Part shown: piece after piece, positions 2,443 to 62,784 of the stretch
How positions within the stretch are numbered: position 1 is the first letter of the stretch
Layout of the letters: every line of letters begins with the position of its first letter
Sequence record: PP885688.1
Reading direction: 5' to 3' (one strand)
Length of the DNA stretch: 64,000 nt
Program-made: the position numbers and the translations under genes
Notes under the pieces: generated by a model
Database searches by the model: none
What the model saw: only the letters and a program-made list of their open reading frames with translations
What the model was told of the DNA's origin: nothing

Positions 2443-3239
2443 CTGATCAGTTGGTCAAAACCACACATAAGAAAGCAGTTACTCCACCCTGGGTAACGTG
2501 GTTACCAATTCTCAGCTGAAACTTTACTGAGTACCACGAACGAAAAGCGAAGAAGCGCTAGCGTTCCTATGTGGCTCGAAACCGTGCAATTAAGTGCACT
2601 TATCAAGCTTGATCCTCCCCTAAAATATAAGGAAGCGCTGTAAGTCCACATAAGCATGGCTTTAGATGTTTATAAGTTAGTAACTAAAGTGGGAAAAAAT
2701 TACCGGGTCGCTGCGCAAAATATTCGCTTTTCCACAGGAAGACATTGCAGGGTCTTGCTACACTCGATCTCATAACACCAGAGTAATGCGGTTACGAAGG
2801 GTACACCTCCGGACACGCCAATCGAAGTGAGGAAACATTTTGCGAACAGGAAAGAATCTACCAGTGCTATCCAGGAATGACCGGAAGCATGCCTCAGCAT
2901 TTCAGGCCACCAGGACGCAAGTCTGCGCACCACTCCCCGCATCACCCCTCTACTCCATTCCAGGGTACGGTTCCCCACCAAGGATCGAATGGAAAAAATA
3001 ATTTCAATTTTTTTCATTCAGTAATTGGGTAAGCAGCTTCAGGTTGGGTATTAGCAATTGTCGACAGTAGAAAAAGTCACTTTCGACATGAGGCTCAGCT
3101 CAACCTAACTGGACCAAACAGACAAGTCGTTACAACGGTGAACCGGTTCCGCTCCGATGATAGAAATCATCGAGCCCCAGTCATCACACGCCCTACCTGT
3201 CTCCAGAAACGGAAACCGTAACACTGCAATGGAGGCAAC
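2443..3239. other. AT-richer, palindrome-rich non-coding region (origin/pac/leader candidate)
   Basis: About 800 bp without a credible ORF; palindromes AACTGATCAGTT, ATCAAGCTTGAT, GAACCGGTTC and hairpins GGTAAC/GTTACC, CGATGAT/ATCATCG. Confidence 0.6.
3022..3054 (+). promoter_or_regulatory. Class 1 phage promoter (TAAT-N20-GGGTATTAG)
   Basis: Matches motif repeated 15 times with a 20-nt spacer; upstream of the sigma-like gene. Confidence 0.8.
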
Positions 3240-4220
3240 TTGAACACTGCTATTTTGACCCTGGGCAATGCACCCTCGATCAACGTGAACTTCGATGAAT
3301 CAACCGTAGCTGAACTGAACGCACTATCTGTCATTACAGACGAAGCCATCGCCGAAGTGGATTTTGATGGCGTTGATGATATTTCCGACGACGTTGACAC
3401 ACTCGATGTCGCCCCCGCCGCTGAGCAAGTCTCAAAGCGCGATCCTTACAGCCGCTCCGAAGACGGTCACTTCATTGGCCACGACGGATTCGTCGTTCCC
3501 CTGAACTTCGAAGAGTTCTACGAACGCTACCCCAAGTATGTCAAGGGATTCATCCGCCGCCTCTGGCACCGCGCCAGTGAGGCCGAGATCGAGGACCGCG
3601 AGAGCGAGCTCCACATCTTCCTGATGACTCTTCCCGAAGGATCGAAGTTCCGTGAGCCCGGCTACAACGGCCTCGAAGATGGTTGCACCGACCGCGTCCA
3701 GATCTTCAACCCTGAGGCCCTCGGCTCTTCAGCTCCGCGCTTCTTCCACTACATCAATACCTGCCTGACGCGCCACTTCTACTCTCTCGCGAAGAAGGCT
3801 GCCTCGAACCCGATCCGCCGCTACAACACGCTGAGCCTCTACTCCCCCGATGGTCAGGGACAGATGATCGACGAAGACTACATCTACACGATGACCAGCG
3901 AACAGGCGAACGCCGGTGTGAACTACGATCAGGTGATTCAGGACGGCGTCTTCGTCAGCCAGTACATCGCGTTTGTCGAGGAGCACAACCCCGAGCTGAT
4001 CCCGGTCATCAACGCGATTCAGGCCTTCGAGACCTACGTGGAGGCGATGAACAATCTCGGCATGACTGAGAAGATGTTTATTCGCGCCCGCAACCGTCTC
4101 GTCGTGCTTCACTCGGCATTCGACAAAGGTGTAAATCCCCCGCGCCAGCGTAAGGTTTATCGCGCTCGTGCGGTTGCGGAGAGCACCAAAATTTCTTCAG
4201 AAAATCTCGTCGCAGTATAA
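3240..4220 (+). CDS. Phage-encoded sigma-70-family (ECF-like) factor
   Basis: Region-2-like FEEFYERYPKYVKGFIRR...EIEDRESELHIFL...FFHYINTCLTRHF; region-4-like HTH YVEAMNNLGMTEKMFIRARNRL; GGAGG SD with TTG start. Confidence 0.6.
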   Translation: MNTAILTLGNAPSINVNFDESTVAELNALSVITDEAIAEVDFDGVDDISDDVDTLDVAPAAEQVSKRDPYSRSEDGHFIGHDGFVVPLNFEEFYERYPKYVKGFIRRLWHRASEAEIEDRESELHIFLMTLPEGSKFREPGYNGLEDGCTDRVQIFNPEALGSSAPRFFHYINTCLTRHFYSLAKKAASNPIRRYNTLSLYSPDGQGQMIDEDYIYTMTSEQANAGVNYDQVIQDGVFVSQYIAFVEEHNPELIPVINAIQAFETYVEAMNNLGMTEKMFIRARNRLVVLHSAFDKGVNPPRQRKVYRARAVAESTKISSENLVAV

Positions 4221-4248
4221 GGGTAAGCGGTCGGTTTTTGAGTATTAG
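4216..4248 (+). promoter_or_regulatory. Class 1 promoter (TATA-N20-GAGTATTAG), leaderless ATG 5 nt downstream
   Basis: Motif match; ATG at 4254 has no SD. Confidence 0.75.
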
Positions 4249-4253
4249 ATCTC

Positions 4254-4928
4254 ATGCAAGGTGAGATCGAATACGTAGACGATAACGACTTCGGAGTACA
4301 AGAAGTAGATTTCAACCGCGAGGTGGCGCGGGATCTTTATCGGGCGGGGTTCGGGTCGGCAGACCTCCTCGCCCGGTGGGATCGAATCAAGACCGAGATC
4401 CGGTTCGAGGATGTAGTCGAGCAGGTTCTGGGGTTCACCGATCCAGTCATTCGCTGCCCCTTCCACGGCGGCAAATCCTTCACACTCTACCGGCGCACCA
4501 ACGATGCCTACTGCTACGGATGCCCTCCCGGCAAAGGCTACTACGACGCAGTCCGCCTGATCGCCTCGCTGAATGGGTACACCACCTCCCAGGCCTGCAC
4601 ATGGCTCGAAAAGCAATACGACCTTCCTCCGCTTGAGAACGTAGCGGACGATGAAGACGAAGACGGGGACGACGAGGATGACACCACTCTCGAGACTCTC
4701 AACTACTCCGATCTGGTAGAGCCCTACATCGCACGTGCTGCCTCCGAGTTCCTGAAGAATCCCGAGCCGGGACTTGCACGCAAGTACATCCAGATCTATT
4801 TCGACAACCTGCCCGACAAGAAGACCGACCTCAACTCTGAAGAGGGTTTGAAGCTGGCCGTTCCGCTCGCGTGCGTTCTCGGTTCCGAAGCCATTGAAGC
4901 AATCAAGATAAAGAGGTTCGGTAAATGA
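4254..4928 (+). CDS. CHC2 zinc-finger protein (primase zinc-binding domain)
   Basis: CPFH...YCYGC motif typical of the DnaG ZBD; no TOPRIM domain. Confidence 0.75.
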   Translation: MQGEIEYVDDNDFGVQEVDFNREVARDLYRAGFGSADLLARWDRIKTEIRFEDVVEQVLGFTDPVIRCPFHGGKSFTLYRRTNDAYCYGCPPGKGYYDAVRLIASLNGYTTSQACTWLEKQYDLPPLENVADDEDEDGDDEDDTTLETLNYSDLVEPYIARAASEFLKNPEPGLARKYIQIYFDNLPDKKTDLNSEEGLKLAVPLACVLGSEAIEAIKIKRFGK

Positions 4929-9196: not shown

Positions 9197-9899
9197 GCGT
9201 CGCGCACGGTTTGCTTTCGAGATGGACAAGAAGGTTACGGTCACCAACAAACGTAACCTGGCCCGTCTTGCCTCCCGCCAGGTCTACGATTCCCTCGCTT
9301 ACGCGCAACGGACCCTCCTCCGCCTGGAGGAATCGGTTCGTTGGATGGCCCACCTGAATCAGGTGGAAGAGCGCCTGCTCCGCATGGGCATTCTTGCGGA
9401 CAAGGACGGCGATCCCGAAGAGAAACGTCTTCGCGCCGCCGCCTTCGAGGCTCTTATGGTTGCCCGGAAGGCCGTCACCACACTCCGCGACCACAAGTCA
9501 GAGATCGCCACGCAGATGGAGGAGGACTTTGATCCGTTCCTCCGCTTATCTGGTCAGCCAAAGGTTGCCAAGAAGCCCGAACCGCCGAAGAAAGCGACAA
9601 CGTTGCAGGAGCAGATGCAACCGCTGGGCGATCCCGCGTCGAAGTGGCAGCCTAAGGCCCCTCCACCAGCTCCCGCCGCATCCAAACCCGCGCCGGTTCA
9701 GGTCAAGCCTGCGCCAGTACCCGCCCCCAAGGCTCCCGCAGCTGCCCCGGCACCTCCGGCCAAGCCCAACCCCATGAAGCTGAAGCTGAATAGTCTTCTT
9801 CTGGCCAAGGCTCGGGCCGAAATCACCGCCCGCGCTAAGGAGAATGCTGAAAACGAGCTATCAGGTCCCTCCTTAGGGACGGTAACTGATGGCAAATAG
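9189..9899 (+). CDS. Hypothetical protein (coiled coil plus Pro/Lys-rich linker)
   Basis: ATG overlaps polA stop; genome-like codon usage. Confidence 0.7.
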   Translation: MPERRARFAFEMDKKVTVTNKRNLARLASRQVYDSLAYAQRTLLRLEESVRWMAHLNQVEERLLRMGILADKDGDPEEKRLRAAAFEALMVARKAVTTLRDHKSEIATQMEEDFDPFLRLSGQPKVAKKPEPPKKATTLQEQMQPLGDPASKWQPKAPPPAPAASKPAPVQVKPAPVPAPKAPAAAPAPPAKPNPMKLKLNSLLLAKARAEITARAKENAENELSGPSLGTVTDGK

Positions 9900-12336
9900 G
9901 CACAAGAACAGACCGGCATCGAAGAAGCCTGCAACCAAGCCTGCGAATACCCCAAAGGCAACCAAGCAGGAGAAGTTCTTCTCCGCCGGACGCTACACGA
10001 CCGTGGATGACAACGGGCAGGTGAACCATAACCTGGCTTCGCTGACTCGCATGGCCGCCGCCCGCCGCGCCCGCCAGACCAAGACCGCCGGACTCTTTGA
10101 AGACGGCAACCTTGGACCCTCAAACATCGCCGATTCCAATAACATCGGCTACTACTCCTATCAGTTCCCGGTTGACGCGCTGGAGATGCCAGCCTCCCGT
10201 GCTGAGGAGCTGGAGTTCTATCGCCTCGCCTACACCCGCGACCCAATCGTAGCTCGCGCCATCGACCTGCACACCGAACTTCCGCTCTCGAAGATGAAGC
10301 TGGAGAAGTCGAAGTGTTCGGTCGAATCGTTCTCGGACTATGTGTTCGATTACTTCCAGCGTCTGGTCAACGATACCCGATTCTTTTCTGAGCTGATTCA
10401 GGCAACCCGCGAGTACCACACCGTGGGAGAGGCATTCCTGTTCATCGAGCAGCCAGAGCACTACATGAATTTGAAGCTGAGCCCGACGACCGCCAAGGCG
10501 CTCAAGCGTGGCCGTGGCTTCCAGGCTGGTGTTAGCCCCATGACCGAAGCCGCCAATGGCGACCTAGTGGGTCAGGACATCCTTCCGGACTTCATTACCG
10601 CCCGTGGTAAACAGTCCTCGCTGAACGCGAAGGCGAAGGTCCAGGCGATGCAGCTGAAGTTCGCCGATGCCGGTGTCAGCTTCTCGGAAGACGAAGACCC
10701 CGATGACGTGCAGCGCGTGATTGTCCGCCGCCGTGCCAAGCTCTCCAAGCTGCTCAAGAAGCAGATCCGTGACCTCCGTGTTGCGGCGCTCGTAGAAGAG
10801 AGTATCAAGAAGGAAGCCGCAGCCAAGTTTGCGGCGCTGAAGGTTGCGGCCCCAGGTGATGAGCCTGCGCCTGCAGCTGACGCGCCTGCCCCCGACGCCG
10901 CGCCCGACGCCGGAGCCGTTGATGCTGGTGCTCCTGATGCCGGTGTGGATGGTGCTGAGGGTGCAGACGGCGGTCTCGACAATCTCGAGGCTGGCGGCGA
11001 TCTCGGTGGCGCTGACTTCGGTGGTGGCGGTGGTTTCGGAGGCGGTGGTGGCGGCGGAGCAACGATCCCGGGCGACATGGCCGAGGCTGCGGATGCTGCT
11101 GTCACAACAGTCGAGACAGCCAAGCGCGATCGCGAGATCAACGACCTCAAGCGTTACATCCACCTGTTGGAGCGCAAGAAGGAACTGCTCGAAGAGCTCA
11201 AGGACCTGGTCGAGAAGCGTCGTCTGGAGAAGGAGATCTTCTCGCACGTGGTCAACGAGGACTACGAAGGCTTCGACCGCATTCAGATCCTCCAGCCCGA
11301 GCGCATCACGATCACGAACGAAAACGGCGAAGAGCCGATGATCACCTACAAGCCGAGCGACGGCGAGAAGATGGGCTACCTCGAAGACGATGAGGTTCCA
11401 CAGGCGACTAAGGACATGCTGGAAGAGCAGGGTCTGATCCCTCTCAACACCAATCCTTTCGCTGGCTCCTATGTTCTCCACTTCGCGCGTAAGAAGTCCG
11501 GCTACGAGCTCCACGGGCGTTCGGCGCTGCAGTCCTGCATGCGTTCGATCATCTACCGTGAGAAGCTGCGCCAGGTACAGACCACACTCGCCAGCCGCAA
11601 CATGACGCCGAAGACGCTGATCACGGCCCCCGGTACCTCTGAGGTCCAGATCGCTCAGCTCCGCGCTCACGCCGACGAAGCGAAGTCCGATCCGGATTAC
11701 ACGATCGTTACAAACTACGACGTGACCTGGAACGAGATCGACTCCCAGTCGCGTCTGCTCAACCTCTCGGACGAGTGGCAGCACACCAACTCGAACCTCG
11801 CCATCGGCCTCGGCTTCTCGCCCGAGATCCTGATCGGTGAAGGCATGTACGGCAACAACCGCATTCAGCTCGACATGATGGGCGTGACCTACACCCAGTT
11901 CCGCGAAGAGCTGTCGGACATGATCGAGAACAAGATCTTCAAACCGATTGCGATGCTCAAGGGTTTCTATGAGAACGACAACTACGGTCGTCCTCGTTGG
12001 ATCTACCCCAAGATCAGCTTCGGTGCGCTCGCTCTGCGGGACTCGAACGACCTCTACGAGATGCTCTTCAATCTCTACTCGAAGGGTTCGCTGCCGGTCT
12101 CCTCGATCTACGAACTCCTCGGCCTCGATGCAGAGACGGTATCGCGTCAGCTCGAAGATGACCTGTTCTCGGTACGCGACTCGAAGTTCAACGAAGCTCT
12201 CGGCTCGACCTACAACAACATCGGCGCAGAGCTGATCGCCAAGACCGACATCGTCAACCGTCTGGCGAAGAGCATGAACCTGAAAGAAGAAGTTCCGGAT
12301 CCCAACGCGATGGAAGGTTCCGGGGAGGGTATGTAA
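9889..12336 (+). CDS. Portal protein with low-complexity insertion
   Basis: YTRDPIVARAIDLHTELP, HFARKKSGYELHGRSALQS and LAIGLGFSPEILIGEG segments typical of phage portals. Confidence 0.75.
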   Translation: MANRHKNRPASKKPATKPANTPKATKQEKFFSAGRYTTVDDNGQVNHNLASLTRMAAARRARQTKTAGLFEDGNLGPSNIADSNNIGYYSYQFPVDALEMPASRAEELEFYRLAYTRDPIVARAIDLHTELPLSKMKLEKSKCSVESFSDYVFDYFQRLVNDTRFFSELIQATREYHTVGEAFLFIEQPEHYMNLKLSPTTAKALKRGRGFQAGVSPMTEAANGDLVGQDILPDFITARGKQSSLNAKAKVQAMQLKFADAGVSFSEDEDPDDVQRVIVRRRAKLSKLLKKQIRDLRVAALVEESIKKEAAAKFAALKVAAPGDEPAPAADAPAPDAAPDAGAVDAGAPDAGVDGAEGADGGLDNLEAGGDLGGADFGGGGGFGGGGGGGATIPGDMAEAADAAVTTVETAKRDREINDLKRYIHLLERKKELLEELKDLVEKRRLEKEIFSHVVNEDYEGFDRIQILQPERITITNENGEEPMITYKPSDGEKMGYLEDDEVPQATKDMLEEQGLIPLNTNPFAGSYVLHFARKKSGYELHGRSALQSCMRSIIYREKLRQVQTTLASRNMTPKTLITAPGTSEVQIAQLRAHADEAKSDPDYTIVTNYDVTWNEIDSQSRLLNLSDEWQHTNSNLAIGLGFSPEILIGEGMYGNNRIQLDMMGVTYTQFREELSDMIENKIFKPIAMLKGFYENDNYGRPRWIYPKISFGALALRDSNDLYEMLFNLYSKGSLPVSSIYELLGLDAETVSRQLEDDLFSVRDSKFNEALGSTYNNIGAELIAKTDIVNRLAKSMNLKEEVPDPNAMEGSGEGM

Positions 12337-12372
12337 ATGACTCTTCACCCGAAGCACGGGGAGGCCATATAG

Positions 12373-52996: not shown

Positions 52997-53045
52997 CCCG
53001 TGTCCAGAGCCGCCGTCAGCAACCTCCTAAAATTTCCCATTTCAA

Positions 53046-53078
53046 TATTGGGTGCACAGAGTCTCCGAACGGTATTAG
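53046..53078 (+). promoter_or_regulatory. Class 1 promoter (TATT-N20-CGGTATTAG)
   Basis: Motif match. Confidence 0.7.
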
Positions 53079-53128
53079 CCCGCAGGAGACTTTATGAAAA
53101 CCGAAATTCTCAACAACGGGGGTTCGCG

Positions 53129-53494: not shown

Positions 53495-53499
53495 CTCAC

Positions 53500-53549
53500 T
53501 GGGGATCGGGCTACGACACTGGGTCGCCGATCCCCATTTTTTCTTCTTT
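53500..53549 (+). terminator. Intrinsic terminator
   Basis: TGGGGATCGG/CCGATCCCCA stem plus T tract. Confidence 0.75.
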
Positions 53550-53554
53550 CGAAA

Positions 53555-53587
53555 GTCATCTTTGGCCCGACGGGCTTTGTAGGTTGA
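53555..53587 (+). promoter_or_regulatory. Class 2 promoter, leaderless
   Basis: AAAGTCATCTTT-N15-GTAGGTTGA-GGAT-ATG. Confidence 0.8.
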
Positions 53588-53591
53588 GGAT

Positions 53592-54734
53592 ATGAGCACA
53601 CTTCTTGAAGCCGCGATGAGCGTTAGCATGACGCTCCAGAACGATAGACACAGCAAGTCCTACTTCGCCGCCATCGAACAGGTTGAAGGTGGGTGGGTCG
53701 TCAACTACACCTACGGCGCGATCGGTGCGATGCAGAAACCCGGCACTAAGACCAAGACCCCTGTCCCCTACGAGAAGGCCTTCGGCATCTGGACCAAGCT
53801 GGTCGGCGAGAAGCTCAACGACCCTTGCGACTGCTGCGGTGCGACCTACACCGGGACCAACGCGACCGCGACCACATCCGAAGGCACCACCTCTGTCTCC
53901 GCCCCCGTGCTCGCGCAGACTCATCCCGGCTTCAGCCCTGAGCTCCTCGAAGCAATCGGCGAGGAGGATGCCGACAAGTACATCCTCGACGACCGCTACG
54001 GCGCTGAGCGTAAGTTCGACGGCGAGCGCCTGTCGATCTCCTACGTCGCCGGAGAGATCATCGGCTACAACCGTCTGGGTAAAGTCGTCCCGGCCCCTGA
54101 CTCGCTCAAGAAAAAGATCGCCTTCCTCATGGACTGGCGCAGCGAGAACGCCGTCCAGATCGACGGTGAGTGGATCCGCGACGAGTACGTTGCTTTCGAC
54201 CTGCTGGTCCTAGGCGGCGACGTCAAGCACCTCCCGATGAAGACTCGCCACAAGATGCTCACCGAGCTCCTGGCGACCACCGGCATCAAGGTAGCAGACC
54301 TCGTCACCGGCAAAGAGATGAAGGCTGCTCTCCTCGTCTGGGAGACAGCACATCGCGGCGAGGGCATCGTCTTCAAGAAGCTCTCCGCCCCGTACATGCC
54401 GGGACGTCGCGGCACCAACGTCAAGCTGAAGTTCTGGGTCTCAGCCACCGTCCGCGTCACCCGCAAGATGAAGAACAAGGACGCGCACAGCTTTGGCATC
54501 GAGGCCCACACGCCCGGCTCGCCTCTGGGTGAATGGGGCTTCGTCGGCAACGTCACCTGCAAGGGACCGCTGCCTGAGATCGGCACCTACCGTGAGGTCA
54601 AGTACCTCTACGTCGGCAAGGGCGGCCACCTGTACCAGTCCGAGGACCTCGGTGCACGTACCGATGTCACCGCTGACGACTGCCTCTACTCCACGCTGAA
54701 GCACAAGCAGGACAAGGAGCTGCTGGCTGTCTAA
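53592..54734 (+). CDS. ATP-dependent DNA ligase with N-terminal WGR-like domain
   Basis: ERKFDGER, IDGE, AFDLL, EGIVFK, KLK motifs; N-terminal SKSYF...VNYTYGAIG. Confidence 0.85.
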   Translation: MSTLLEAAMSVSMTLQNDRHSKSYFAAIEQVEGGWVVNYTYGAIGAMQKPGTKTKTPVPYEKAFGIWTKLVGEKLNDPCDCCGATYTGTNATATTSEGTTSVSAPVLAQTHPGFSPELLEAIGEEDADKYILDDRYGAERKFDGERLSISYVAGEIIGYNRLGKVVPAPDSLKKKIAFLMDWRSENAVQIDGEWIRDEYVAFDLLVLGGDVKHLPMKTRHKMLTELLATTGIKVADLVTGKEMKAALLVWETAHRGEGIVFKKLSAPYMPGRRGTNVKLKFWVSATVRVTRKMKNKDAHSFGIEAHTPGSPLGEWGFVGNVTCKGPLPEIGTYREVKYLYVGKGGHLYQSEDLGARTDVTADDCLYSTLKHKQDKELLAV

Positions 54735-54752
54735 AAGTTTGTTTCGCTGAAA

Positions 54753-54785
54753 GTCATCTTTCGCTTGTTTCACTTTGTAGGTTGA
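54753..54785 (+). promoter_or_regulatory. Class 2 promoter, leaderless
   Basis: AAAGTCATCTTT-N15-GTAGGTTGA-AAAT-ATG. Confidence 0.8.
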
Positions 54786-54789
54786 AAAT

Positions 54790-55584
54790 ATGAGCACACA
54801 CAACAGCCCGAACCTGTCAGACGTAACCAACATGATCGCCGAGCACGGCGACAACCTGGCATTCGTGGTCAACATGAGCGGCGGTAAAGACTCTGTACGT
54901 ATGCTCGGCTTCATCCGTGAACACTTTCCACTCCAAAAAACGTACGTGGTCATGGCCGACACCGGTTTCGAACATGCGAAGCCCGTGTCGGCTGAGGACT
55001 GGGCCCGGCAGATCAGCGCCAGCTACGGCCTCGACCTCCATGTCGTCAAGAATCCCAACAAGACCTACCTCCAGATGGTCGAGAACCGCAAGATGTTCCC
55101 GTCGGCCTCGACCCGCCAGTGCACCTCGGACCTCAAGCGCGGTCCGATCCAGAAGTTCATCCGCCACCTCGACGAGAAGGTCATCATCAGCGTCATGGGT
55201 ATTCGCGCCGAAGAGTCACCGGCTCGCTCGAAGCAGAATCCCTGGAAGTTCAACGCGGGCATGTCCAAGGCCGGACGCATCATCTGGGACTGGATGCCGA
55301 TCTTCGAAGAGACCCTCACCGAGGTCCTCAACTGGCACCACGAGAACAACGTTCCCCTTCACCCGGTTTACGTCGAGGAGTATCACCGCGACGGCACCAA
55401 GGGTGGTTTCCTGCGACGCCTCTCCTGCCGCGTCTGCATCTTCTCCACCGACCACGACCTCCGCGAGATTTACAAGCACGATCGCGAGGCCTTCGACCTA
55501 GTCGCCAATCTCGAGACCAAGATCGGCTTTACGATGAAGTCAGGCAAGAGCCTGTTTCAGATCCTCGGCCAGGAGGCCGCATAG
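54790..55584 (+). CDS. PAPS reductase-family (adenine nucleotide alpha hydrolase) protein
   Basis: PP-loop SGGKDS, ADTG, RQCTSDLK, GIRAEES, RLSCRVC. Confidence 0.85.
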   Translation: MSTHNSPNLSDVTNMIAEHGDNLAFVVNMSGGKDSVRMLGFIREHFPLQKTYVVMADTGFEHAKPVSAEDWARQISASYGLDLHVVKNPNKTYLQMVENRKMFPSASTRQCTSDLKRGPIQKFIRHLDEKVIISVMGIRAEESPARSKQNPWKFNAGMSKAGRIIWDWMPIFEETLTEVLNWHHENNVPLHPVYVEEYHRDGTKGGFLRRLSCRVCIFSTDHDLREIYKHDREAFDLVANLETKIGFTMKSGKSLFQILGQEAA

Positions 55585-55752
55585 ATGGCTTGCGAATGTT
55601 GCACCAATGAAGTTGAGTTCGAAGTGTCGATGATCAACAAGAACGGCTACGATCTCACCGACCACGTCATGGCGCATACCGCTCAAGAGGCTATGTTCCG
55701 CGCTGAGCTCAGACATCTCCCCTACACCGCCCAGAAAGCGATCGCCATATGA
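55585..55752 (+). CDS. 55-aa hypothetical protein (not in ORF track)
   Basis: AGGAGG SD; ATGA overlap with next gene. Confidence 0.5.
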   Translation: MACECCTNEVEFEVSMINKNGYDLTDHVMAHTAQEAMFRAELRHLPYTAQKAIAI

Positions 55753-56120
55753 GCAACACTCCCACCCTTCGCCCTTACCAACAGGAAGCATTAGCAAGCA
55801 TCGAGCAGATCCTTGCCCAGGGACGTAAGTTCCAGATCCTGGCCGTAGACGACAGTGCTCCACTAGGCAACGCCCTCGACAGCTACCGTGAGGAGCTCCT
55901 CGACGAGCAGCGCCGCATCACCGCCCAGGAGATCAAGTTCTTCTTCTTCGACGGAGAGAAGGTCATCAAACGTGCGGGGGAACCACCTCTACCACGCGGC
56001 ACCTACTTCGCCGCCCACTACATCATCACCGACGGCGTCGTCACCAAGGACAAGGCGACCGGCACTGAGGTCGAGCACATGGTTATGGCGGCAGTTCGCG
56101 CGGATGCGGAGGACCTGTGA
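55749..56120 (+). CDS. Hypothetical protein with LRPYQ helicase Q-motif-like N-terminus
   Basis: TLRPYQQEAL but no Walker A. Confidence 0.55.
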   Translation: MSNTPTLRPYQQEALASIEQILAQGRKFQILAVDDSAPLGNALDSYREELLDEQRRITAQEIKFFFFDGEKVIKRAGEPPLPRGTYFAAHYIITDGVVTKDKATGTEVEHMVMAAVRADAEDL

Positions 56121-56434
56121 TCGCCTTCCCGAAAATGCTTGGGCTCCCAGAGACGAAGCCGCAGCTACGGGTCTACCGCGTGAGTGGACTCTGGAACGAC
56201 GTACGTGCGAAGAACCGGCACAATCAAGCCAACTTCGTGTGCGCCGCTGCAAGCAAGGCCGCATTCTTTCGGCTTTACCCCGACTTCCGTAACAACGAGG
56301 TCGCCGTTGAGCTCAGAGGTCCCGTCAAAGCCCTCGCACGCACCAAGCCCGGCGCTCTCTTCGCCCTGGGTATCACCGACTGGACCGGACACTTCGTCGA
56401 GGTCACAGACATGTCGACCGTGAGGCGGGGATAA
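56117..56434 (+). CDS. Hypothetical protein
   Basis: GTGA overlap; GGAGG SD. Confidence 0.6.
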   Translation: MIAFPKMLGLPETKPQLRVYRVSGLWNDVRAKNRHNQANFVCAAASKAAFFRLYPDFRNNEVAVELRGPVKALARTKPGALFALGITDWTGHFVEVTDMSTVRRG

Positions 56435-56436
56435 CG

Positions 56437-56658
56437 ATGAGCGTGATAGCAGACGGTTACTGGATCGTCGAATGGGATGATGTGACAACAAACTTCGAAA
56501 AGGCCACCTATCGCGGTGTTGTGCGTGTCGAGCGAGAAAACTTCGGCCACGGTAACGCCAAGGTCTACACGACGGTGCCGCACTTGAAGAACGTTTGGAA
56601 GATGGAAGAGTTCGAGAAGTACAACCGGTTCATCCGGCCTGTGGAGATGTGGCCATGA
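56437..56658 (+). CDS. Hypothetical protein
   Basis: ORF in run. Confidence 0.55.
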   Translation: MSVIADGYWIVEWDDVTTNFEKATYRGVVRVERENFGHGNAKVYTTVPHLKNVWKMEEFEKYNRFIRPVEMWP

Positions 56659-56888
56659 TGATCTGGTCACTCCAGTGGAGCCGAGACCAGGGCAACTTCG
56701 TGCGCCTTGAAAACGTGCACTTCGACCCCGAGCTAACTGAATGCTGGCTGCAGGACGTCCGAGAGCGCCTGCCCGACACCATCGTCATGGTTCGCTACCC
56801 AAAGCCCACCGTCGAGGAGATGGAGAACAGTCCTGAAGCGATGCAGCTGGAGCTGGAGCATGCCCGCGAGTATGCCCAGGCCGAGTAA
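56655..56888 (+). CDS. Hypothetical protein
   Basis: ATGA overlap. Confidence 0.55.
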   Translation: MMIWSLQWSRDQGNFVRLENVHFDPELTECWLQDVRERLPDTIVMVRYPKPTVEEMENSPEAMQLELEHAREYAQAE

Positions 56889-56904
56889 ATTTCTTCCCCC
56901 CAAA

Positions 56905-56937
56905 GTCATCTTTTGCGCATCCGCCTCTGTAGGTTGA
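56905..56937 (+). promoter_or_regulatory. Class 2 promoter
   Basis: AAAGTCATCTTT-N15-GTAGGTTGA; leader carries AAGGAG SD. Confidence 0.8.
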
Positions 56938-56955
56938 GAATAAGGAGCAACAGAG

Positions 56956-57750
56956 ATGAGCAATCGGATTGAGTGCGGTACGTTTCGGGTAGCTGAGGAT
57001 AAGGTCTACCATTACGCGGGCTACGAGTGCGCGGCATGGTCGAAGGACACAGCCGTCAAGGCAGGGAGCTACCCAGTGTTCGCTCTCATCGAGAAGGGCC
57101 ACGTGAAGTATTTCCTCGTCACCCTCCCGGGCGTCATCGTCGAGGACAACTTCCAGAGCCTCTTCGGTGGCATGGCGATCGGGAAGAGCTACGACGCCAA
57201 GCAGAACGCCGGTCAACCCTCCAACGAGCACATCCAGGCGTACGAATACATCGTCTTCGAGTCCATGACCAAGGCCGATAGCCCGTGGTCGATCGATGTC
57301 TCGAAGCTCCCCAACATCGGGGTATGTGTGAACCCCGCCTGCGGATCCTACGTCTCGGTCTACGAGACTCCCCGCCACTGCCCGAGGTGTTCCGTCGCCC
57401 TGGCGGAAGAGGGTAAGGCGAAGATCGAGGCACGGCACTCGTTCCTGCTCGACGCGGCCCACGTCGTACGGCCCACCGAGTTCTCCTCCATTCTCGATTC
57501 CACCATTTATGAATACCAGCGCAACGATAGGTTGGCGGGCTACCACCGCGACCAACTGATCAAAGTGATTGCTGGCCTGCGCAAGGCTGGACCTGAGGGA
57601 AGGAAGGCGGCGAGGGCGAGATACAGCCCTCGGTACCGCCGGGTTGCTGCCCCACCTGTAGCACCGAACACGCACCGTGAAGCCCTGACCGAGTTCATCG
57701 TGAACCTGTCAGAATCCCAGGAGGTAATTCGAGATGCAGTCAAAAACTGA
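56956..57750 (+). CDS. Hypothetical protein with zinc-ribbon-like CVNPAC...HCPRC
   Basis: SD and class 2 promoter upstream. Confidence 0.75.
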   Translation: MSNRIECGTFRVAEDKVYHYAGYECAAWSKDTAVKAGSYPVFALIEKGHVKYFLVTLPGVIVEDNFQSLFGGMAIGKSYDAKQNAGQPSNEHIQAYEYIVFESMTKADSPWSIDVSKLPNIGVCVNPACGSYVSVYETPRHCPRCSVALAEEGKAKIEARHSFLLDAAHVVRPTEFSSILDSTIYEYQRNDRLAGYHRDQLIKVIAGLRKAGPEGRKAARARYSPRYRRVAAPPVAPNTHREALTEFIVNLSESQEVIRDAVKN

Positions 57751-58060
57751 TGTCCCTGTTGTGCTGAACTTTCCTACTCCCAAGCCTGAGCCCGTCTCCG
57801 AGGCCGACCGCGAAGCCGCCGTCCTCCACGACATGATGATCCACGACATATGCAAGGACACCCGCACGGCGCTCCAGGAGCTGCGCCACGGGATCGTGCA
57901 TGTCCTGCTCGACACGCTGGATAAGATGGACCCGGATGAGGCGACGCTCGTCCAGTTGCTAGACGAGCGTCCCAGTGTTGTTCGCGAACTTATGGCAGGA
58001 GAGACCGACGGCCTAACGACGGAAACGTTGACTGAGTACCTAGAGAAGCTTCGCGCTTAG
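57734..58060 (+). CDS. Hypothetical protein
   Basis: GGAGG SD. Confidence 0.6.
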   Translation: MQSKTDVPVVLNFPTPKPEPVSEADREAAVLHDMMIHDICKDTRTALQELRHGIVHVLLDTLDKMDPDEATLVQLLDERPSVVRELMAGETDGLTTETLTEYLEKLRA

Positions 58061-59429
58061 CCTCATCAGTCATCGGTGGGGCGCTGGTGCGAACCGTACC
58101 GGCCCCGCCCGCCGTGCGAACGATTCCTTTCGCTGACCCCGCCTTCAACATGGCGTCGACGTAGTCGTCACCGAACTCTTTCCTCTGTTGCTCGATGAAG
58201 GCATCCTCTTCGGCTTCGAAGATAGCAACCAACTCAGGGTCTCCGCCGGTGGCTTCATAGGCTCGCAGTGACGCCGCATCTGTCGGCTTGGCGATCGGCT
58301 TATCCCATCCTTCCCAGAAGCCACGCTCGGCCTCTGGAAGCGTGTTGATGTCGAAGGCTGGCCGGAAGATAGGCTGGTCTGCTGGGCCCGACTTCGCTGG
58401 ACCTACTTCAGGGTCACCTTCATAGCGAACCAGTGCACGATCCCATGGCGACACGTGAGAGAGATCGCTTCCACGCTTGACTGGTGTGCGGTCGACATCC
58501 TGATTCAGAGCTGGAGCGGCGGCACCAAACTTCAAGATGGTGCCTGGAGGCAGATCCATCACGTTGATGTGCTTGTTCCCGTTCGTGCCCAGGTCAACGA
58601 CGCCTTCGCCGGTCTTGCTGAAGTCCTTCGCGTTGGCTGAGACGTGCTCGGTCGGAGGGATGTACTCTCTGCGAGTCCGGCGGCGGATTGGCTTCTCAGG
58701 ATTACCGGCGAGCTCCGACGTCAGCATGCCACGGACCTCGGCGAGAGCGTCTTGCATAGACAAGCTGTCGAAGCGTCTCTCTTCCCGGCTGATGACACCG
58801 GTCGAGATGTATGGATTGTCGTCGACCACTGGTGAAATTTCTGCGTGTGTGCCTTCCTCGTAGGTGTTACCATCCGGCCCAGGGAAAATAGTTTCACCGA
58901 ACGGACTGGAGAGCTCGGAAGGGTCGGCAGCCCTGAGAGTACCGGGCTCTCCGTTGACCATCGGTGAGGTAGGTAGGAAGGCCTTGTAGGTATCAATGAA
59001 GGACTCCTCAGGGACTGACTGAATCGTCTCTCTCACCGTGATACCTTCGGCGTCATACTTCAGCGTTCCATCCAGCTCTGCCGCCCTCATGAAGCCATGG
59101 GGCTGAGTCGGAGATACGAGATACAGCAACGCAGCGCCCAAGCCCATCTCTCCATCCTTCATCGTCTCGATCACCTCGACCAGGCCGCGAATCAGACGAA
59201 CAGTAGCGCAGTCGGTGCAGGCATAGCCCAGCCCATCGACGGGATAGCCGAAGCGGATCCGCGTCTGGCATCTGGCCACAAAGCAGCGTGTCTCACTCTC
59301 GATCGCGTAGGGTTTTTCGAGGAGGTCCGACGGGAACGTGCCGGTCAGGATCGCATCACGCAGTTCTGCGTAACGCTTTTCTGTGATGAGTTCTTTGGTT
59401 GGCGATGTGCCCGCCGGACGCATGGTCAT
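57990..59429 (-). CDS. Hypothetical protein (479 aa)
   Basis: Long ORF; 3' end overlaps the convergent + gene by 71 bp. Confidence 0.7.
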   Translation of the reverse strand: MTMRPAGTSPTKELITEKRYAELRDAILTGTFPSDLLEKPYAIESETRCFVARCQTRIRFGYPVDGLGYACTDCATVRLIRGLVEVIETMKDGEMGLGAALLYLVSPTQPHGFMRAAELDGTLKYDAEGITVRETIQSVPEESFIDTYKAFLPTSPMVNGEPGTLRAADPSELSSPFGETIFPGPDGNTYEEGTHAEISPVVDDNPYISTGVISREERRFDSLSMQDALAEVRGMLTSELAGNPEKPIRRRTRREYIPPTEHVSANAKDFSKTGEGVVDLGTNGNKHINVMDLPPGTILKFGAAAPALNQDVDRTPVKRGSDLSHVSPWDRALVRYEGDPEVGPAKSGPADQPIFRPAFDINTLPEAERGFWEGWDKPIAKPTDAASLRAYEATGGDPELVAIFEAEEDAFIEQQRKEFGDDYVDAMLKAGSAKGIVRTAGGAGTVRTSAPPMTDEAKREASLGTQSTFPSLGRRSLLP

Positions 59430-59704
59430 TCTGAATCCTTCCCACTGAGTTCGCGAATCCAGGCCTGGCGGTCTGCTTCGAGGTCCTTGTTGAGTTTTCG
59501 AGTGATGAGGATCGCCGCTACCGCAAGGACGATGCCGAAGATGAAGTCAAAGAGGGAGCGCTTGAGCATCCCCAGGGCGAAGTACGATAGGCCGAGGACG
59601 AAGGCCGCGAAGACCCACAGCCGCAGAATGCGCAGGCTGAAGGTCCACTCGTACAGGTGGTCACGAAACACGATGCCGATCGCTAACTCATGCCTCTGTG
59701 ACAC
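59426..59704 (-). CDS. Two-TM membrane protein
   Basis: Two hydrophobic helices; overlapping start/stop. Confidence 0.65.
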   Translation of the reverse strand: MSQRHELAIGIVFRDHLYEWTFSLRILRLWVFAAFVLGLSYFALGMLKRSLFDFIFGIVLAVAAILITRKLNKDLEADRQAWIRELSGKDSE

Positions 59705-60161
59705 GGTTCACCTCCAGCCACTGACGTCCTGCAGGGGTGAGCGTGTAGGCCAGCTTGTAGGAGCCCTGGTGAAGGACCTTGCCGAACTCGTGGACGAACT
59801 TGAGATTGGTGACGAGCTCCTTCATCCGAGTCGACGCCGAGCTGAGAGGTACGTTCGAGCGGAGAGAGATCTGGTCTGCACAGAGAGCGAAGTCTCCGGC
59901 CTGGGCGAGCACGCGAAGGATGGCACGCTTCTGGCGTGACACGTTGACCTTGGCTGCAGCGATGACGGAGGTCTCACGGTCGCCGGAGTGAGCGGATCCG
60001 GCTCCATTGCGGGCAGCGGAGCGGGCACGGCGGCTCGTGTAGTTCTTGTCGAGCTGTTCTTCAATGGCGGACCGCAGCTTGACTGGGTCGGTGATAGCGA
60101 TAACGGCGAGGATCTGGGCGGCTACTGCATCGTTGCGGAGTGGAGCATTCAAGGTGGACAT
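59688..60161 (-). CDS. Winged-helix DNA-binding protein
   Basis: ILRVL...LCADQIS...VPLSSASTRMKELV...YTLT; leaderless after class 1 promoter. Confidence 0.7.
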   Translation of the reverse strand: MSTLNAPLRNDAVAAQILAVIAITDPVKLRSAIEEQLDKNYTSRRARSAARNGAGSAHSGDRETSVIAAAKVNVSRQKRAILRVLAQAGDFALCADQISLRSNVPLSSASTRMKELVTNLKFVHEFGKVLHQGSYKLAYTLTPAGRQWLEVNRVTEA

Positions 60162-60166
60162 GTGGG

Positions 60167-60199
60167 GTAATACCGTTCCCGCATGCCCGACCCTGAATA
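60167..60199 (-). promoter_or_regulatory. Class 1 promoter (TATT-N20-CGGTATTAC), leaderless
   Basis: Motif match; ATG 5 nt downstream. Confidence 0.75.
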
Positions 60200-60209
60200 T
60201 CGGTAGGAA

Positions 60210-60416
60210 TTATTTCTGCAGGCTGAGGTAGTTCACTTCGACGCGCTCGTGATGAATACCGTCGTCGGTTTTGATCATCAGGTCACACTGCAGGTCCTTG
60301 CCCGCTTCGATAGTGAGCTGGATGCCGACGATGCCCTCGATCTTCTGGCCGGAGAGCTGCTCGCGGACCCAGGTGTGGCCTATGGAGACATCTCCACTGA
60401 TGCTTACTGTGCGCAT
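60210..60416 (-). CDS. Hypothetical protein
   Basis: AAGGAAG SD. Confidence 0.65.
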   Translation of the reverse strand: MRTVSISGDVSIGHTWVREQLSGQKIEGIVGIQLTIEAGKDLQCDLMIKTDDGIHHERVEVNYLSLQK

Positions 60417-60427
60417 GATTCTTCCTT

Positions 60428-60531
60428 TGTTCTATCTTTGTTCGGGTTTTCGGTTTGTTCGTACAGTACGAACACGGGCTGTTCACGAACAGGCCTCGTT
60501 CACGTAACGTGAACAAGCGGTTTGAGTGAAC
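60428..60531. promoter_or_regulatory. GTTC/GAAC palindromic operator array
   Basis: TGTTCGTAC-A-GTACGAACA, CTGTTC-AC-GAACAG, GTTCACGT-A-ACGTGAAC, plus GTTC-N7-GTTC at 60429-60443. Confidence 0.65.
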
Positions 60532-60533
60532 GG

Positions 60534-60875
60534 CTACTTGGCTGTGGGCTTTGCGTCTGGTGCCTGCTCTGCACGATTCGGTGGGCTGACCTTGCGGCGC
60601 AAGCCGGTACCGAGCTCGTTGAAGTAGAGGACGCCTTCGTAGTCATCCGGCTGACCATCAGCAACCCACGTCTTCAACACCGCGCCGGTCATCGAGAGCT
60701 GCGTGACGATGTAAGGATCGTGCTGCTGGTGATCGAGGTAGGCATCCCGCTTGGCGTCGTCGGCATATTGCTTCAGCACGGCTGGGTCTGGTGGCTTGCG
60801 ATACTCGTAGGTGCCGAACGAGGCGACAGCTGCACCCACGGCGAGAGCGGCGATGCGTGTGTAGAGTGTGCGCAT
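60534..60875 (-). CDS. Membrane-anchored/secreted hypothetical protein
   Basis: N-terminal hydrophobic segment. Confidence 0.6.
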   Translation of the reverse strand: MRTLYTRIAALAVGAAVASFGTYEYRKPPDPAVLKQYADDAKRDAYLDHQQHDPYIVTQLSMTGAVLKTWVADGQPDDYEGVLYFNELGTGLRRKVSPPNRAEQAPDAKPTAK

Positions 60876-61102
60876 CAGTCGAACCAGACCGTGAGGAACT
60901 TATAGACGCCGATGACTAGGAATAGGCAGTAGGTCAACGAGTGGTAGCGACCCTGCGGATGGAGCGCGACGAGGACAATGAAGTAGATGACCCCGATCGC
61001 GAGAGCCCAGACAATCGTGCGGACGACGCGCGAGTAGAGCAGGTAGTCGAGCGCCTTGAGGATGTTATGAATCACGGCGAAACCTCCGTAGGTAGGGAAC
61101 AA
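60875..61102 (-). CDS. Small two-TM protein
   Basis: Hydrophobic helices; start uncertain. Confidence 0.55.
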   Translation of the reverse strand: MFPTYGGFAVIHNILKALDYLLYSRVVRTIVWALAIGVIYFIVLVALHPQGRYHSLTYCLFLVIGVYKFLTVWFD

Positions 61103-61292
61103 TCACCGGGACGAACATGAACAGTGCGACCCAGAGAGAGCTCGTGGAAAAGTGAACGTGGAGCTTGTGAAACCTGAACACGATATGGATCAGGCTGTTG
61201 CTGAAGAGCATCACCAGGTAGAGGGTCACGTAGCTCACCGTCACGAGGAGGCGAGCTACGGATTTGCCATAGATGAACCGCAGCCCGGCCAC
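61065..61292 (-). CDS. Small two-TM protein
   Basis: Hydrophobic helices; coupled start. Confidence 0.55.
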   Translation of the reverse strand: MAGLRFIYGKSVARLLVTVSYVTLYLVMLFSNSLIHIVFRFHKLHVHFSTSSLWVALFMFVPVIVPYLRRFRRDS

Positions 61293-62053
61293 TACTCGAC
61301 CGGTCCGATAGCGACGCCCGCAGCGACTTTCAGCGCGAGACGTTTCTTGAAGTGCTCGACCGGCAGTGAGAGAACCCGCTCGATCTCGTTCTTCTGGATC
61401 TCTTCGAGGTCGAGGCCATAGGACTCCGCCAGAGCCAGGAGCGTCATGCTGAGGCCTGCGAGCTCCTGCGGGACCTCGCCGACAGGACGACCGTAGACGT
61501 AGAGAGCGAGCTCGATGACCTTCTCAAAAGGGAGACCACAGGCCTGGGCCAGTTCGATCGCCTCTTCGAGGACGCGGCGGCTGCGCTCGGACCCATTCGT
61601 GAAGGACGCCTCACCGAAGCAACGCAGAACCCAGTCACCAATGATCTGTTGAATGGACATCGACTTCGGCCACTCTTCCATCAGGATCTGGTTGACCAGA
61701 CGCGCACCAGCTTCGAGTGACTCGACCTGGGTCAGCTTGTCATGCAGGATTGCGGTGGGCAGCAGACCGCTCAGATCGCCGACGACAACCACGCGGGTGC
61801 CCTGGGCGAGAGCTGCGCCGATCTCCAGAAGGCCGCCCTTGAGGACTTCGCCTTCATTGACAAGCACGAACACGACGGCTGCGGATGCGGCCTCTTTCAG
61901 ATAGCGCGGCCAGGCCTCTGCGAAGTTGATCTCTTCCGGGCCTCCGTCGTCGATCCACGAGGAGATGATGGGAAAGCTGTGCTCACGCATCTTGCGCCAC
62001 AACGGGGCGTGCGTGATCTTCGAAACGACGTAGACTCCCTGCTTACCTGCCAC
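61292..62053 (-). CDS. Nucleoside deoxyribosyltransferase-like N-domain fused to MazG-like NTP-PPase
   Basis: VYVVS...GGLLEIGAALAQG..VVVVG; VLEEAIEL...QELAG..MTLLALA..YGLDL. Confidence 0.6.
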   Translation of the reverse strand: MAGKQGVYVVSKITHAPLWRKMREHSFPIISSWIDDGGPEEINFAEAWPRYLKEAASAAVVFVLVNEGEVLKGGLLEIGAALAQGTRVVVVGDLSGLLPTAILHDKLTQVESLEAGARLVNQILMEEWPKSMSIQQIIGDWVLRCFGEASFTNGSERSRRVLEEAIELAQACGLPFEKVIELALYVYGRPVGEVPQELAGLSMTLLALAESYGLDLEEIQKNEIERVLSLPVEHFKKRLALKVAAGVAIGPVE

Positions 62054-62696
62054 TTGGAACCTCCAGAAACTTGATGATTGGTGCGTTGTTGATCACGTAC
62101 GCCTCGTTCATCGCGGCGCAGTTTACGAACTCTGTGTTGGGGAAGATGGTGGTGCGCTGCTCGCCATAACTTCCGTGGATATGGCCGAAGATGTGGAGCC
62201 GAGGCTTGACGCGGTTGATCGCAAGCAGCAGCTCATCGCATCCCAGGTGCTCTCCACCGGGCCGTAGCTGGTCACGGAGGCCGAGAGCAGGCCCATGGGT
62301 GATCAGCACGTCGGTGTCGTTGGGAATGCGGTCCCAGAAGCGGCGGATAGGTAGACCACGCGGCACGTTGAAGGCCCAGTTCATGAACTCGGGCTGTTGG
62401 GGGGAACCGTAGAACTTGATGCCCTCGATCTCGACGCCGGAGTTCTCCAGATAGATCGCACTGGTGAGGAAGCTGCGGGCGTACGAGTTCTGTCTCTCAA
62501 AGAGAATGTCGTGGTTGCCCGCGATGACGATCTTGTGGCGGTGGGGCTGACTGGCAAGCCACTGGTTGAAGTCCCAGATCTCGTCCGCCACTCGACCGGA
62601 GAGCATGAAGTCTCCGGCGTGAATGAGAACGTCGCCTTCCGGGATTTGAGTCAGGCGGTGAGACCCGTGTGTGTCGCTGATGCAAACGATGCGCAT
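62043..62696 (-). CDS. Metallophosphoesterase (MPPED/239FB-like)
   Basis: ISDTH, HAGD, IAGNHD, LITHGP, HIFGHIH. Confidence 0.9.
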   Translation of the reverse strand: MRIVCISDTHGSHRLTQIPEGDVLIHAGDFMLSGRVADEIWDFNQWLASQPHRHKIVIAGNHDILFERQNSYARSFLTSAIYLENSGVEIEGIKFYGSPQQPEFMNWAFNVPRGLPIRRFWDRIPNDTDVLITHGPALGLRDQLRPGGEHLGCDELLLAINRVKPRLHIFGHIHGSYGEQRTTIFPNTEFVNCAAMNEAYVINNAPIIKFLEVPSGR

Positions 62697-62751
62697 GGTG
62701 AGACCTCGTGCTGGAGGTCGGCTGCACCAAAACGCATCGGCCTCTCCATGG

Positions 62752-62784
62752 CTAATACCCACGCGAGAGGCCGATCCTGGATTA
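62752..62784 (-). promoter_or_regulatory. Class 1 promoter (TAAT-N20-GGGTATTAG)
   Basis: Motif match. Confidence 0.8.

Follow-up and report, generated by a model that had tools for sequence, protein, structure and literature searches.

Phage-encoded sigma factors read temporal promoter classes, as do gp28 and gp33/34 in SPO1, gp55 in T4, and gp36 in phiEco32. Among sigma factors of the extracytoplasmic function (ECF) type, an AT-rich -35 element is known for PvdS-type members. For phages of Acidobacteria, we know of no described transcription signals. The motif of sigmaB is AGGTTT-N17-GGGTAT (DBTBS, as quoted in PMC6849360), and leaderless genes have been predicted in all three Acidobacteria genomes analyzed, at proportions of 9.7 to 19.4% (Zheng et al., PMC3160421). 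We examined a candidate promoter motif, Class 1, in a 64,000-nucleotide (nt) window consisting of bases 1 to 64000 of Tunturiibacter phage Tunturi_5, whose record (PP885688.1) is circular, measures 308,711 bp, and has 350 annotated coding sequences. Tunturi_5, a jumbo myovirus, was isolated from Arctic tundra soil on Tunturiibacter psychrotolerans X4BP1, a member of Acidobacteriota, and 91% of its genome is coding; the paper that describes it nowhere uses the words promoter, sigma, or motif (PMC11924767). Judging from the sequence, Class 1 is a real, previously undescribed promoter signal that extends over the whole Tunturi_5 genome.

The original prediction, made from the letters of the window, had proposed 15 copies of a W-rich tetramer followed, after a 20-nt spacer, by a 9-mer. 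All 15 were recovered at the same positions and on the same strands, with 9-mers starting at 3046, 4240, 15193, 18132, 19035, 22691, 44476, 45407, 46444, 50107, 52458, and 53070 on the plus strand and at 44405, 60175, and 62760 on the minus strand; in every copy, the tetramer begins 24 nt 5′ of the 9-mer, as the proposed spacer requires. The 9-mer consensus, SRGTATTAS, holds for 14 copies; the copy at 52434-52466 reads GGGTATTGA, which is off consensus but fits the weight matrix (29.9 bits). SRGTATTAS occurs 14 times in the window against 0.84 ± 1.08 expected, and none of 100 dinucleotide-preserving shuffles reached 14; GGGTATTA was observed 10 times, with 0.20 expected. A weight matrix spanning positions -30 to +9 (where 0 is the first G of GGGTATTAG, or of the 9-mer) was iterated over the whole genome and retrieved 65 sites at 15.9 to 45.1 bits, above the next best match (10.2 bits) and the best score in 632 kb of unrelated metagenomic control DNA (10.4 bits). 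The motif is therefore genome-wide rather than a feature of the window only. Fifty-nine of the 65 sites are intergenic, and nearly all have a co-oriented gene a short distance downstream. The sites thus have what is generally expected of sigma-dependent promoters, namely, blocks at fixed spacing, located upstream of genes and co-oriented with them, the gap between blocks being an invariant 19 to 20 nt. Their counts, placement, and orientation, together with a fixed distance to ATG codons and conservation in relatives (see below), indicate that Class 1 is nonrandom and promoter-like.

The tetramer proved to be the core of a real but larger upstream element, T-28 C-27 R-26 A-25 T-24 A-23 W-22 T-21 C-20, which is preceded by an AT-rich block at -40 to -33. 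The spacer that follows is 19 nt long and G/C-rich, with W at -15 and conserved G-11 C-10 C-9 C-8. The -10 region comprises T-1, GGGTATTA, S+8, and C+9, and a purine occupies +14 in 55 of the 65 sites. GGGTAT is present in 49 sites, and SRGTAT is present in all except AGGTATTAG at genome position 240024. Altogether, the information content reaches 45 bits over 39 nt.

Start codons lie at characteristic distances from this motif. An ATG occupies +14 to +16 in 16 of the 65 sites, with 0.82 expected. Annotated starts fall exactly 5 nt past the 9-mer in 14 cases (13 ATG and 1 GTG), which leaves no room for a Shine-Dalgarno sequence, and at 6 nt in one case; none falls at 7 to 13 nt, and the remainder lie at 14 nt or more. 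Such a bimodal distribution is the pattern expected of leaderless and Shine-Dalgarno-led mRNAs that arise from one fixed start. One further site lies 14 nt 5′ of tRNA-Arg(ccg). The four ATG codons that the original prediction had singled out 5 nt 3′ of the 9-mer are all annotated starts. They belong to gp4 (primase; ATG at 4254, 5 nt after GAGTATTAG), whose site at 4216-4248 (+, 23.8 bits) would be the promoter of gp4 to gp8; to gp47 (dUTPase; ATG at 44391, site at 44397-44429, -, 24.3 bits); to gp48 (helicase; ATG at 44490), whose site at 44452-44484 (+, 30.9 bits) stands back to back with that of gp47; and to gp72 (MarR-like; ATG at 60161, site at 60167-60199, -, 32.5 bits). The reading of these sites as leaderless promoters is strongly backed by statistics, position, orientation, and conservation, the start site itself being a prediction from sequence; we regard this as good evidence for leaderless starts, at the predicted transcription start, in part of the Class 1 sites.

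Three gene starts elsewhere in the genome also touch on the motif. In gp303 (DNA methyltransferase; genome 248825-248875), an in-frame ATG lies 36 nt 5′ of the annotated start and exactly 5 nt past a Class 1 9-mer; because of this position, the annotated start is probably wrong. A Class 1 site within gp321 (genome 261820-261836) precedes an in-frame ATG and may give rise to an internal isoform, and the GTG annotated as the start of gp139 overlaps a 9-mer of Class 1 (genome 103217).

Six metagenomic contigs from related phages have Class 1 at orthologous positions; four carry clear sites (L008, L136, L137, and L221), and two carry relaxed matches (L139 and L140). In L008, a 307-kb relative whose gp3 homolog is 49% identical, a site lies ~200 nt 5′ of that homolog, and the orthologous primase site has its ATG 5 nt after GGGTATTAC. 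In the three short contigs that carry gp211 orthologs, namely, L136 and L137 (both at 62%) and L221 (41%), Class 1 lies 5 nt 5′ of the ATG of the gene before the sigma gene, and it occurs again downstream; in L221, the -10 block is intact and the upstream element is degenerate. In a three-way alignment, conservation covers the upstream element, the 9-mer, and the beginning of the coding sequence, and the spacer varies. L139 and L140, which are IMG/VR contigs and carry gp3 homologs of greater divergence, have W4-N20-SRGTATT sites adjoining the homolog, and in L140, the motif lies ~200 nt 5′ of it. The pattern ATAWTC-N18-TGGGTATTA was also tried on IMG/VR; it gave one match per contig only, and rescoring with the matrix identified these as chance matches. 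A scan of IMG/VR with the ECF alignment gave no match, and the metagenome scan with that alignment, from which the control DNA was taken, gave only generic ECF factors at ~30% identity.

Outside these relatives, the motif was not seen. Tunturi_4 (PP885687.1), a siphovirus of the same host genus, contains no GGTATTA in 88 kb, and no Class 1 match was found in ~100 kb of host-like DNA (loci L011, L134, L135, and L138), 20.7 kb of which is chromosome of Tunturiibacter gelidiferens. The Tunturi_4 genome has a repeated word of its own, CTAGGA(A/T)T, present 67 times (CTAGGA, 255 times) in 88 kb, where ~2 copies per 8-mer are expected. We considered it as a host-type promoter and rejected it, as the copies are on both strands and mostly in genes; it may be a modification, restriction-related, or compositional signal.

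Which factor could read Class 1? No register of the motif matches a primary-sigma promoter. Read as TATTAS, the hexamer ends in G, C, or A, and T is found there in 0 of 65 sites; read as GTATTA at -12 to -7, the placement that leaderless starts demand, it puts T at -11; and motif positions -21 to -16, examined for a TTGACA element, read T-C-R-S-S-S and contain none. Since no register gives both A-11 and T-7 with a start at the ATG, Class 1 does not look like a primary-sigma promoter. The GGGTAT core had been likened to the -10 hexamer of sigmaB and SigF lacking its -35 partner, and this description is accurate, with GTTT located 12 to 17 nt upstream in only 1 of 65 sites. Nor does Class 1 have the hallmarks of ECF promoters, as there is no AAC in the upstream block (ATAWTC) and no CGT in the -10 region (SRGTATTA).

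A second class of sites does look like the work of a primary sigma factor. Class 2, found among upstream regions without Class 1 and even more sharply defined than it, has the consensus CAAA(T/G)TCATCTTTGG-N9-GGTTTG-TAGGTT-GAG and occurs at 36 sites genome-wide, scoring up to 60 bits. Nine of these are in the window, with the first base of TAGGTTG at 16253, 18188, 51767, 52387, 53580, 54778, and 56930 on the plus strand and at 42251 and 43895 on the minus strand. Class 2 sites lie mostly 5′ of small hypothetical genes, 11 of them have an ATG 6 nt after TAGGTT, and two relatives, L010 and L136, contain one copy each. From its sequence, Class 2 resembles a primary-sigma promoter of the extended -10 type whose -35 region is noncanonical, and it is the best candidate for the host sigmaA because TGnTAGGTT is a textbook extended -10 (TGnTANNNT) in canonical register. 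Two Class 1 sites accompany it in the window: that 5′ of gp11 (18108-18140, +, 42.6 bits) is in tandem with the Class 2 site at 18188 (56.9 bits), and the putative promoter of gp59 (52434-52466, +), the copy with the variant 9-mer, is located 3′ of the Class 2 site at 52387. The claim that a sigma factor other than the primary one reads Class 1 is thus backed indirectly, by the missing A-11/T-7 register, by the lack of T after TATTA in all 65 sites, and by the primary-sigma appearance of Class 2.

Canonical sigma70 promoters, considered as a possible early class, are almost absent. TTGACA-N16-18-TATAAT occurs once in window positions 44000 to 63500, at a place that is not a Class 1 site, compared with 5.1 ± 2.3 times in shuffles, and the whole 309 kb holds only seven intergenic near-matches of the canonical type. 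Some conserved class must therefore be read at time zero, and it is conceivable, although improbable, that Class 1 is this class, that is, a set of early promoters for the host holoenzyme, whose sigma could be the primary one or an alternative one of the host. The UP-like block or injected ADP-ribosyltransferase (ART) proteins might assist this enzyme, and the phage sigmas would act only later, on other classes. The AT-rich block is at the distance of an UP element, three virion-type ART-PolyVal proteins are encoded, and both phage sigma genes, the MarR-like gp72, and the NusG-like gp25 lie behind Class 1, as they would for a class that precedes the phage sigmas. Against this stand the lack of T at the -7 equivalent in all 65 sites and of any A-11 register, the far better fit of Class 2 to sigmaA, the absence of GGTATTA from Tunturi_4, and the lack of matches in the host-like DNA, which is a small sample. 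The three ART-PolyVal proteins, gp225 (163409-167197), gp273 (225802-230271), and gp321 (261501-265589), are annotated as MutT/NUDIX hydrolases; they are polyvalent proteins of 1262 to 1489 amino acids that combine an ART-PolyVal ADP-ribosyltransferase with GNAT, NUDIX, SprT, or 2′-5′ RNA ligase domains, a composition typical of injected multienzyme proteins.

A phage activator bound to TC-R-ATAWTC might instead redirect sigmaA, as MotA and AsiA do in T4 by sigma appropriation, with GGGTATTAG serving as a noncanonical -10. The upstream block is centered near -37, too far for a normal -35, and is more variable in distant relatives such as L221; the served genes, moreover, resemble T4 middle genes (replication, recombination, and tRNAs). 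In the window, the genes served by Class 1 include gp9 (sliding clamp; site at 15169-15201, +, 33.8 bits, intergenic, 25 nt to the start), gp14 (ATPase; 19011-19043, +, 37.5 bits, 27 nt to the start), and gp23 (exonuclease; 22667-22699, +, 41.7 bits), which is followed by the clamp loader and gp25. We consider this activator rather improbable, since MotA-dependent promoters keep a sigma70 -10 whereas that of Class 1 is not sigmaA-like; furthermore, no MotA/AsiA-like protein is annotated, although no dedicated search was made, and in half of the sites, the upstream block has no palindrome of the kind that a dimer would bind.

The reading that we favor is that Class 1 sites are promoters of leaderless or short-leader mRNAs that are probably read by a nonprimary specificity factor, most likely a phage protein of the sigma-70 family. 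Such a factor, which is not the primary sigma in its unmodified form, would bring the host core RNA polymerase to a long bipartite site which, counted from the start, consists of an AT-rich, UP-like block at about -54 to -47, TC-R-ATAWTC at about -42 to -34, and T-GGGTATTA-S at -15 to -6. Transcription would begin at the purine 6 nt after the 9-mer. In about one-fifth of the sites, this purine would be the A of the ATG, yielding a leaderless mRNA, and the remaining transcripts would have a leader of 9 to 60 nt with a GGAGG Shine-Dalgarno sequence.

The original prediction had held that the sigma factor was probably the phage's own. This is plausible, as two such proteins are encoded by Tunturi_5, the ECF sigma gp211 and the sigma-like gp3; what complicates it is that both genes are located 3′ of Class 1 copies. 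We think it somewhat probable that a phage sigma reads the motif, with gp211 and gp3 having roughly equal shares in that expectation. gp211 (genome 151918-152616, minus strand, outside the window) matches Sigma70_r2 at 2e-11, r4_2, and many NCBIfam ECF models and, on these profile matches, is a genuine ECF sigma. Its C-terminal tail is conserved and Cys-rich (CKCGCGT). The gene upstream, gp212 (genome 152618-153211), has an HhH/Ogg-like glycosylase fold and is predicted to be cotranscribed with it; there is no downstream anti-sigma. Class 1 lies 5 nt 5′ of the ATG of the gp212-gp211 operon in Tunturi_5, L136, L137, and L221, the arrangement expected of ECF autoregulation.

The other candidate, gp3 (3240-4220, +), is annotated as a sigma factor, yet it has no match in Pfam, NCBIfam, PHROG, or PDB sequences, the last searched both singly and as a profile. 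Its 34 aligned homologs share a conserved core, a segment resembling region 4.2 (LGxTERLFxRARNRLxVL), and then an invariant basic tail (PPRQRKVYR). An AlphaFold (AF2) model, with a predicted local distance difference test score of 70 (cores, >85), has two helical domains joined by a disordered linker of ~45 residues. gp3 is possibly a member of an unrecognized sigma family common to phages and mobile elements. Homologs that are ~60% identical over the core are carried by mobile elements, both within the host genus and in bacteria from soil: their loci include chromosome positions 2305667-2326398 of Tunturiibacter gelidiferens M8UP28 (L138), a Tn7-like tnsA/B/C-tniQ element (L135), an integrase neighbor (L011), and transposases (L134). 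A profile search of genome contigs with the gp3 alignment returned a single locus, in T. gelidiferens; in this species, the homolog WP_433968301.1 is cargo of a Tn7-like element. The Class 1 site that would drive gp3 (3022-3054, +, 38.0 bits, with an AT-rich block at 3000-3020) lies 185 nt 5′ of the gene, and Class 1 is similarly found 5′ of gp3 in L008 and L140. Since both genes have the motif upstream, the autoregulatory layout does not discriminate between them.

The surroundings of the gp3 promoter have features of their own. The leader of ~190 nt between the site and gp3 (window 3055-3239) is conserved in length (L008, 9800-10000; L139 and L140, ~9750-10000), and in the relatives, it contains two copies of CGYCGWMGTGTGTCT, possibly a site through which gp3 expression is regulated. 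On the other side, window positions 2443 to 3021 form a stretch of ~580 nt without an annotated gene between gp2 and the promoter; it is richer in A and T, it contains several palindromes of short length, and 2700-3017 on the minus strand is an unannotated open reading frame of 105 codons.

What separates the two candidates is mixed. The case for gp211 rests on a Class 2 site two genes 5′ of the gp212-gp211 operon with no terminator-like site in between, a layout that is kept in L136. In favor of gp3, synteny beside the terminase and DNA polymerase genes is conserved in every relative examined, the 307-kb relative, in which Class 1 is retained, yielded no gp211 ortholog, and the length of the gp3 linker could match that of the Class 1 spacer. 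As for the co-occurrence of the two genes, contigs with one do not extend far enough to reveal whether the other is lacking. In the cascade that we prefer, host sigmaA would first read Class 2, including the site upstream of gp214-gp213-gp212-gp211. gp211 would then read Class 1 and thereby feed back on its own operon and activate replication, nucleotide-metabolism, and tRNA genes as well as gp3, which in turn would serve a later class. The temporal order is conjectural, and gp3 is nearly as likely as gp211 to be the Class 1 reader.

Several observations weigh against a phage sigma as the reader, besides the missing gp211 ortholog just mentioned. The two blocks are 26 bp apart from center to center, more than separates the elements of sigma70, group-3, or ECF promoters, and Class 1 lacks the AAC and CGT of ECF sites. 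It may thus be that sigma region 4 does not read the upstream block. Because gp211 and gp3 both lie behind Class 1, the first to act must be either of the two or a host factor. The sigma likeness of gp3 is faint: 20 of its top 24 Foldseek matches are sigma factors, at weak E values of 0.05 to 3, and hhalign pairs it with the gp211 family collinearly through regions 2.1 to 2.4 and 4.2 at a probability of only 1.3%. No Class 1 site is located near gp3 homologs in bacterial mobile elements or in L010. Finally, the served genes are not purely of a middle type, as some sites lie within structural modules.

Another conceivable reader is an unrecognized phage-encoded RNA polymerase of the T7, N4, or phiKZ kind, to which the high information of the sites (≤45 bits over 39 nt) could point; several large proteins, gp128, gp160, gp252, and gp70, are without a domain match. 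Such an enzyme is very unlikely. No phage RNA polymerase is annotated, and Pfam scans of eight large proteins, four of which had no match at all, detected no RNA polymerase domain; a bipartite layout with a variable spacer is sigma-like rather than T7-like, and the presence of two sigma-family genes argues that the host core enzyme is used.

Some Class 1 sites are bracketed by hairpins. The spacer and the region 3′ of the 9-mer are complementary over 5.12 bp, compared with 4.38 ± 0.12 bp in arm-swapped controls (0 of 5,000 permutations). Inverted repeats enclose the -10 at window positions 45396-45429, 46433-46464, 53060-53091, and 62736-62775 and at genome positions 218485-218515 and 93654-93680. 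The first of these, at the site of gp49 (dCMP deaminase; 45383-45415, +, 32.9 bits), has perfect 8-bp arms, GCCCTCCA and TGGAGGGC, is followed by TTTTCTT, and was the top match of a generic terminator-like scan. The site of gp50 (ThyX; 46420-46452, +, 42.1 bits, 18 nt to the start) has an 8-bp stem formed by GGCCCTCG and CGAGGGCC, that of gp60 (53046-53078, +, 29.5 bits) has a 7-bp repeat with the stem AGTCTCC, and that of gp78 (metallophosphoesterase; 62752-62784, -, 39.2 bits) has an 11-bp repeat with the stem ATCGGCCTCTC. The 3′ arm often holds the GGAGG Shine-Dalgarno sequence, and a T-run follows some of the stems. A terminator-like hairpin of another placement, at 50042-50069, directly precedes the site of gp55 (50083-50115, +, 34.8 bits).

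It could be argued from this excess of complementarity, and from the ~10 perfect stems of at least 7 bp that carry GGGTATTAG in the loop, that Class 1 acts in RNA, as a hairpin loop, processing site, or translational-control site, and is not a promoter at all. We give this very little credence, less than any other explanation. Most sites have no convincing stem, the upstream block and the AT tract are outside any stem, the 16 ATG codons at 5 nt leave no room for a Shine-Dalgarno sequence, and an Rfam scan of the window found no family; the hairpins are better explained as terminators or anti-Shine-Dalgarno structures that act on read-through. As transcripts initiated at the promoter lack the 5′ arm, the hairpins would stop or silence read-through transcripts only, and the sites concerned may be combined units of terminator or anti-Shine-Dalgarno element and promoter. 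A more specific proposal joins these structures to gp3: Class 1 would be read by the gp3 family, a sigma-like group invisible to current profile libraries, with a subset of -10 regions held in the loops of terminator/anti-Shine-Dalgarno hairpins. This combination is unlikely. If it is true, the long linker and the basic tail of gp3 would explain the 19- to 20-nt gap and the AT-rich upstream block, and the hairpin sites would let only promoter-started transcripts be translated.

The structural-module genes may have a signal of another kind. A loose YYTT(W)TAGR element (CCTTATAGAG, CTTTAGAAG) lies 5′ of ~20 of 34 of these genes and is, tentatively, a possible late class; examples are found in the window at 12360-12372 (gp8) and 28030-28045 (gp28) and in the genome at gp242-gp253 and gp321-gp347. 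TATAG and TTAGA each occur six times upstream of structural genes, with 0.5 expected. Expectation maximization, used to look for a late class, drifted toward purine runs that resemble Shine-Dalgarno sequences, and its result was discarded.

As a sharp promoter class with a predictable start, Class 1 would improve gene-start annotation, as in gp303, and offers a testable cascade for a 309-kb phage. Together with its putative readers, it could also provide candidate orthogonal promoter-sigma pairs for use in Acidobacteria, a phylum that is abundant in soil and lacks genetic tools.

With the promoters of the group-3 factors sigmaB of Bacillus subtilis and SigF of mycobacteria, Class 1 shares the first six bases of the -10, GGGTAT; unlike theirs, its -10 extends to GGGTATTA-S, its partner is ATAWTC at 19 to 20 nt upstream, and Tunturi_5 encodes no group-3 sigma. 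ECF (group 4) promoters are likewise bipartite, and in four genomes, Class 1 is located directly 5′ of the phage ECF sigma operon, in the classic autoregulatory layout; its spacer, however, is 3 to 5 nt longer than the 16 to 17 nt typical of ECF promoters. The leaderless promoters of Actinobacteria, Deinococcus, and Acidobacteria also have a -10 close to the start codon, at a constant distance and without a Shine-Dalgarno sequence, yet they use the primary-sigma TANNNT, which in Tunturi_5 fits Class 2 (TAGGTT, 6 nt, ATG) and not Class 1. T4 middle promoters, composed of a MotA box and a sigma70 -10, serve the same kinds of genes (replication, recombination, nucleotide metabolism, and tRNAs) and also replace the normal -35 with an upstream element; in Class 1, by contrast, the -10 does not resemble that of sigma70, the center of the upstream block is near -37 rather than -30, and no MotA/AsiA homolog is known here. 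The YYTT(W)TAGR element, for its part, is reminiscent of the T4 late promoter, TATAAATA. The broadest likeness is to the sigma classes of SPO1, T4, and phiEco32, as Tunturi_5 has sigma-family genes of its own and several sharp, phage-specific consensus classes. Although the Class 1 consensus is unrelated to theirs, the host is acidobacterial, and many transcripts are predicted to be leaderless, the placement of the Tunturi_5 sigma genes behind promoters of another class suggests, by analogy with these phages, a transcriptional cascade.

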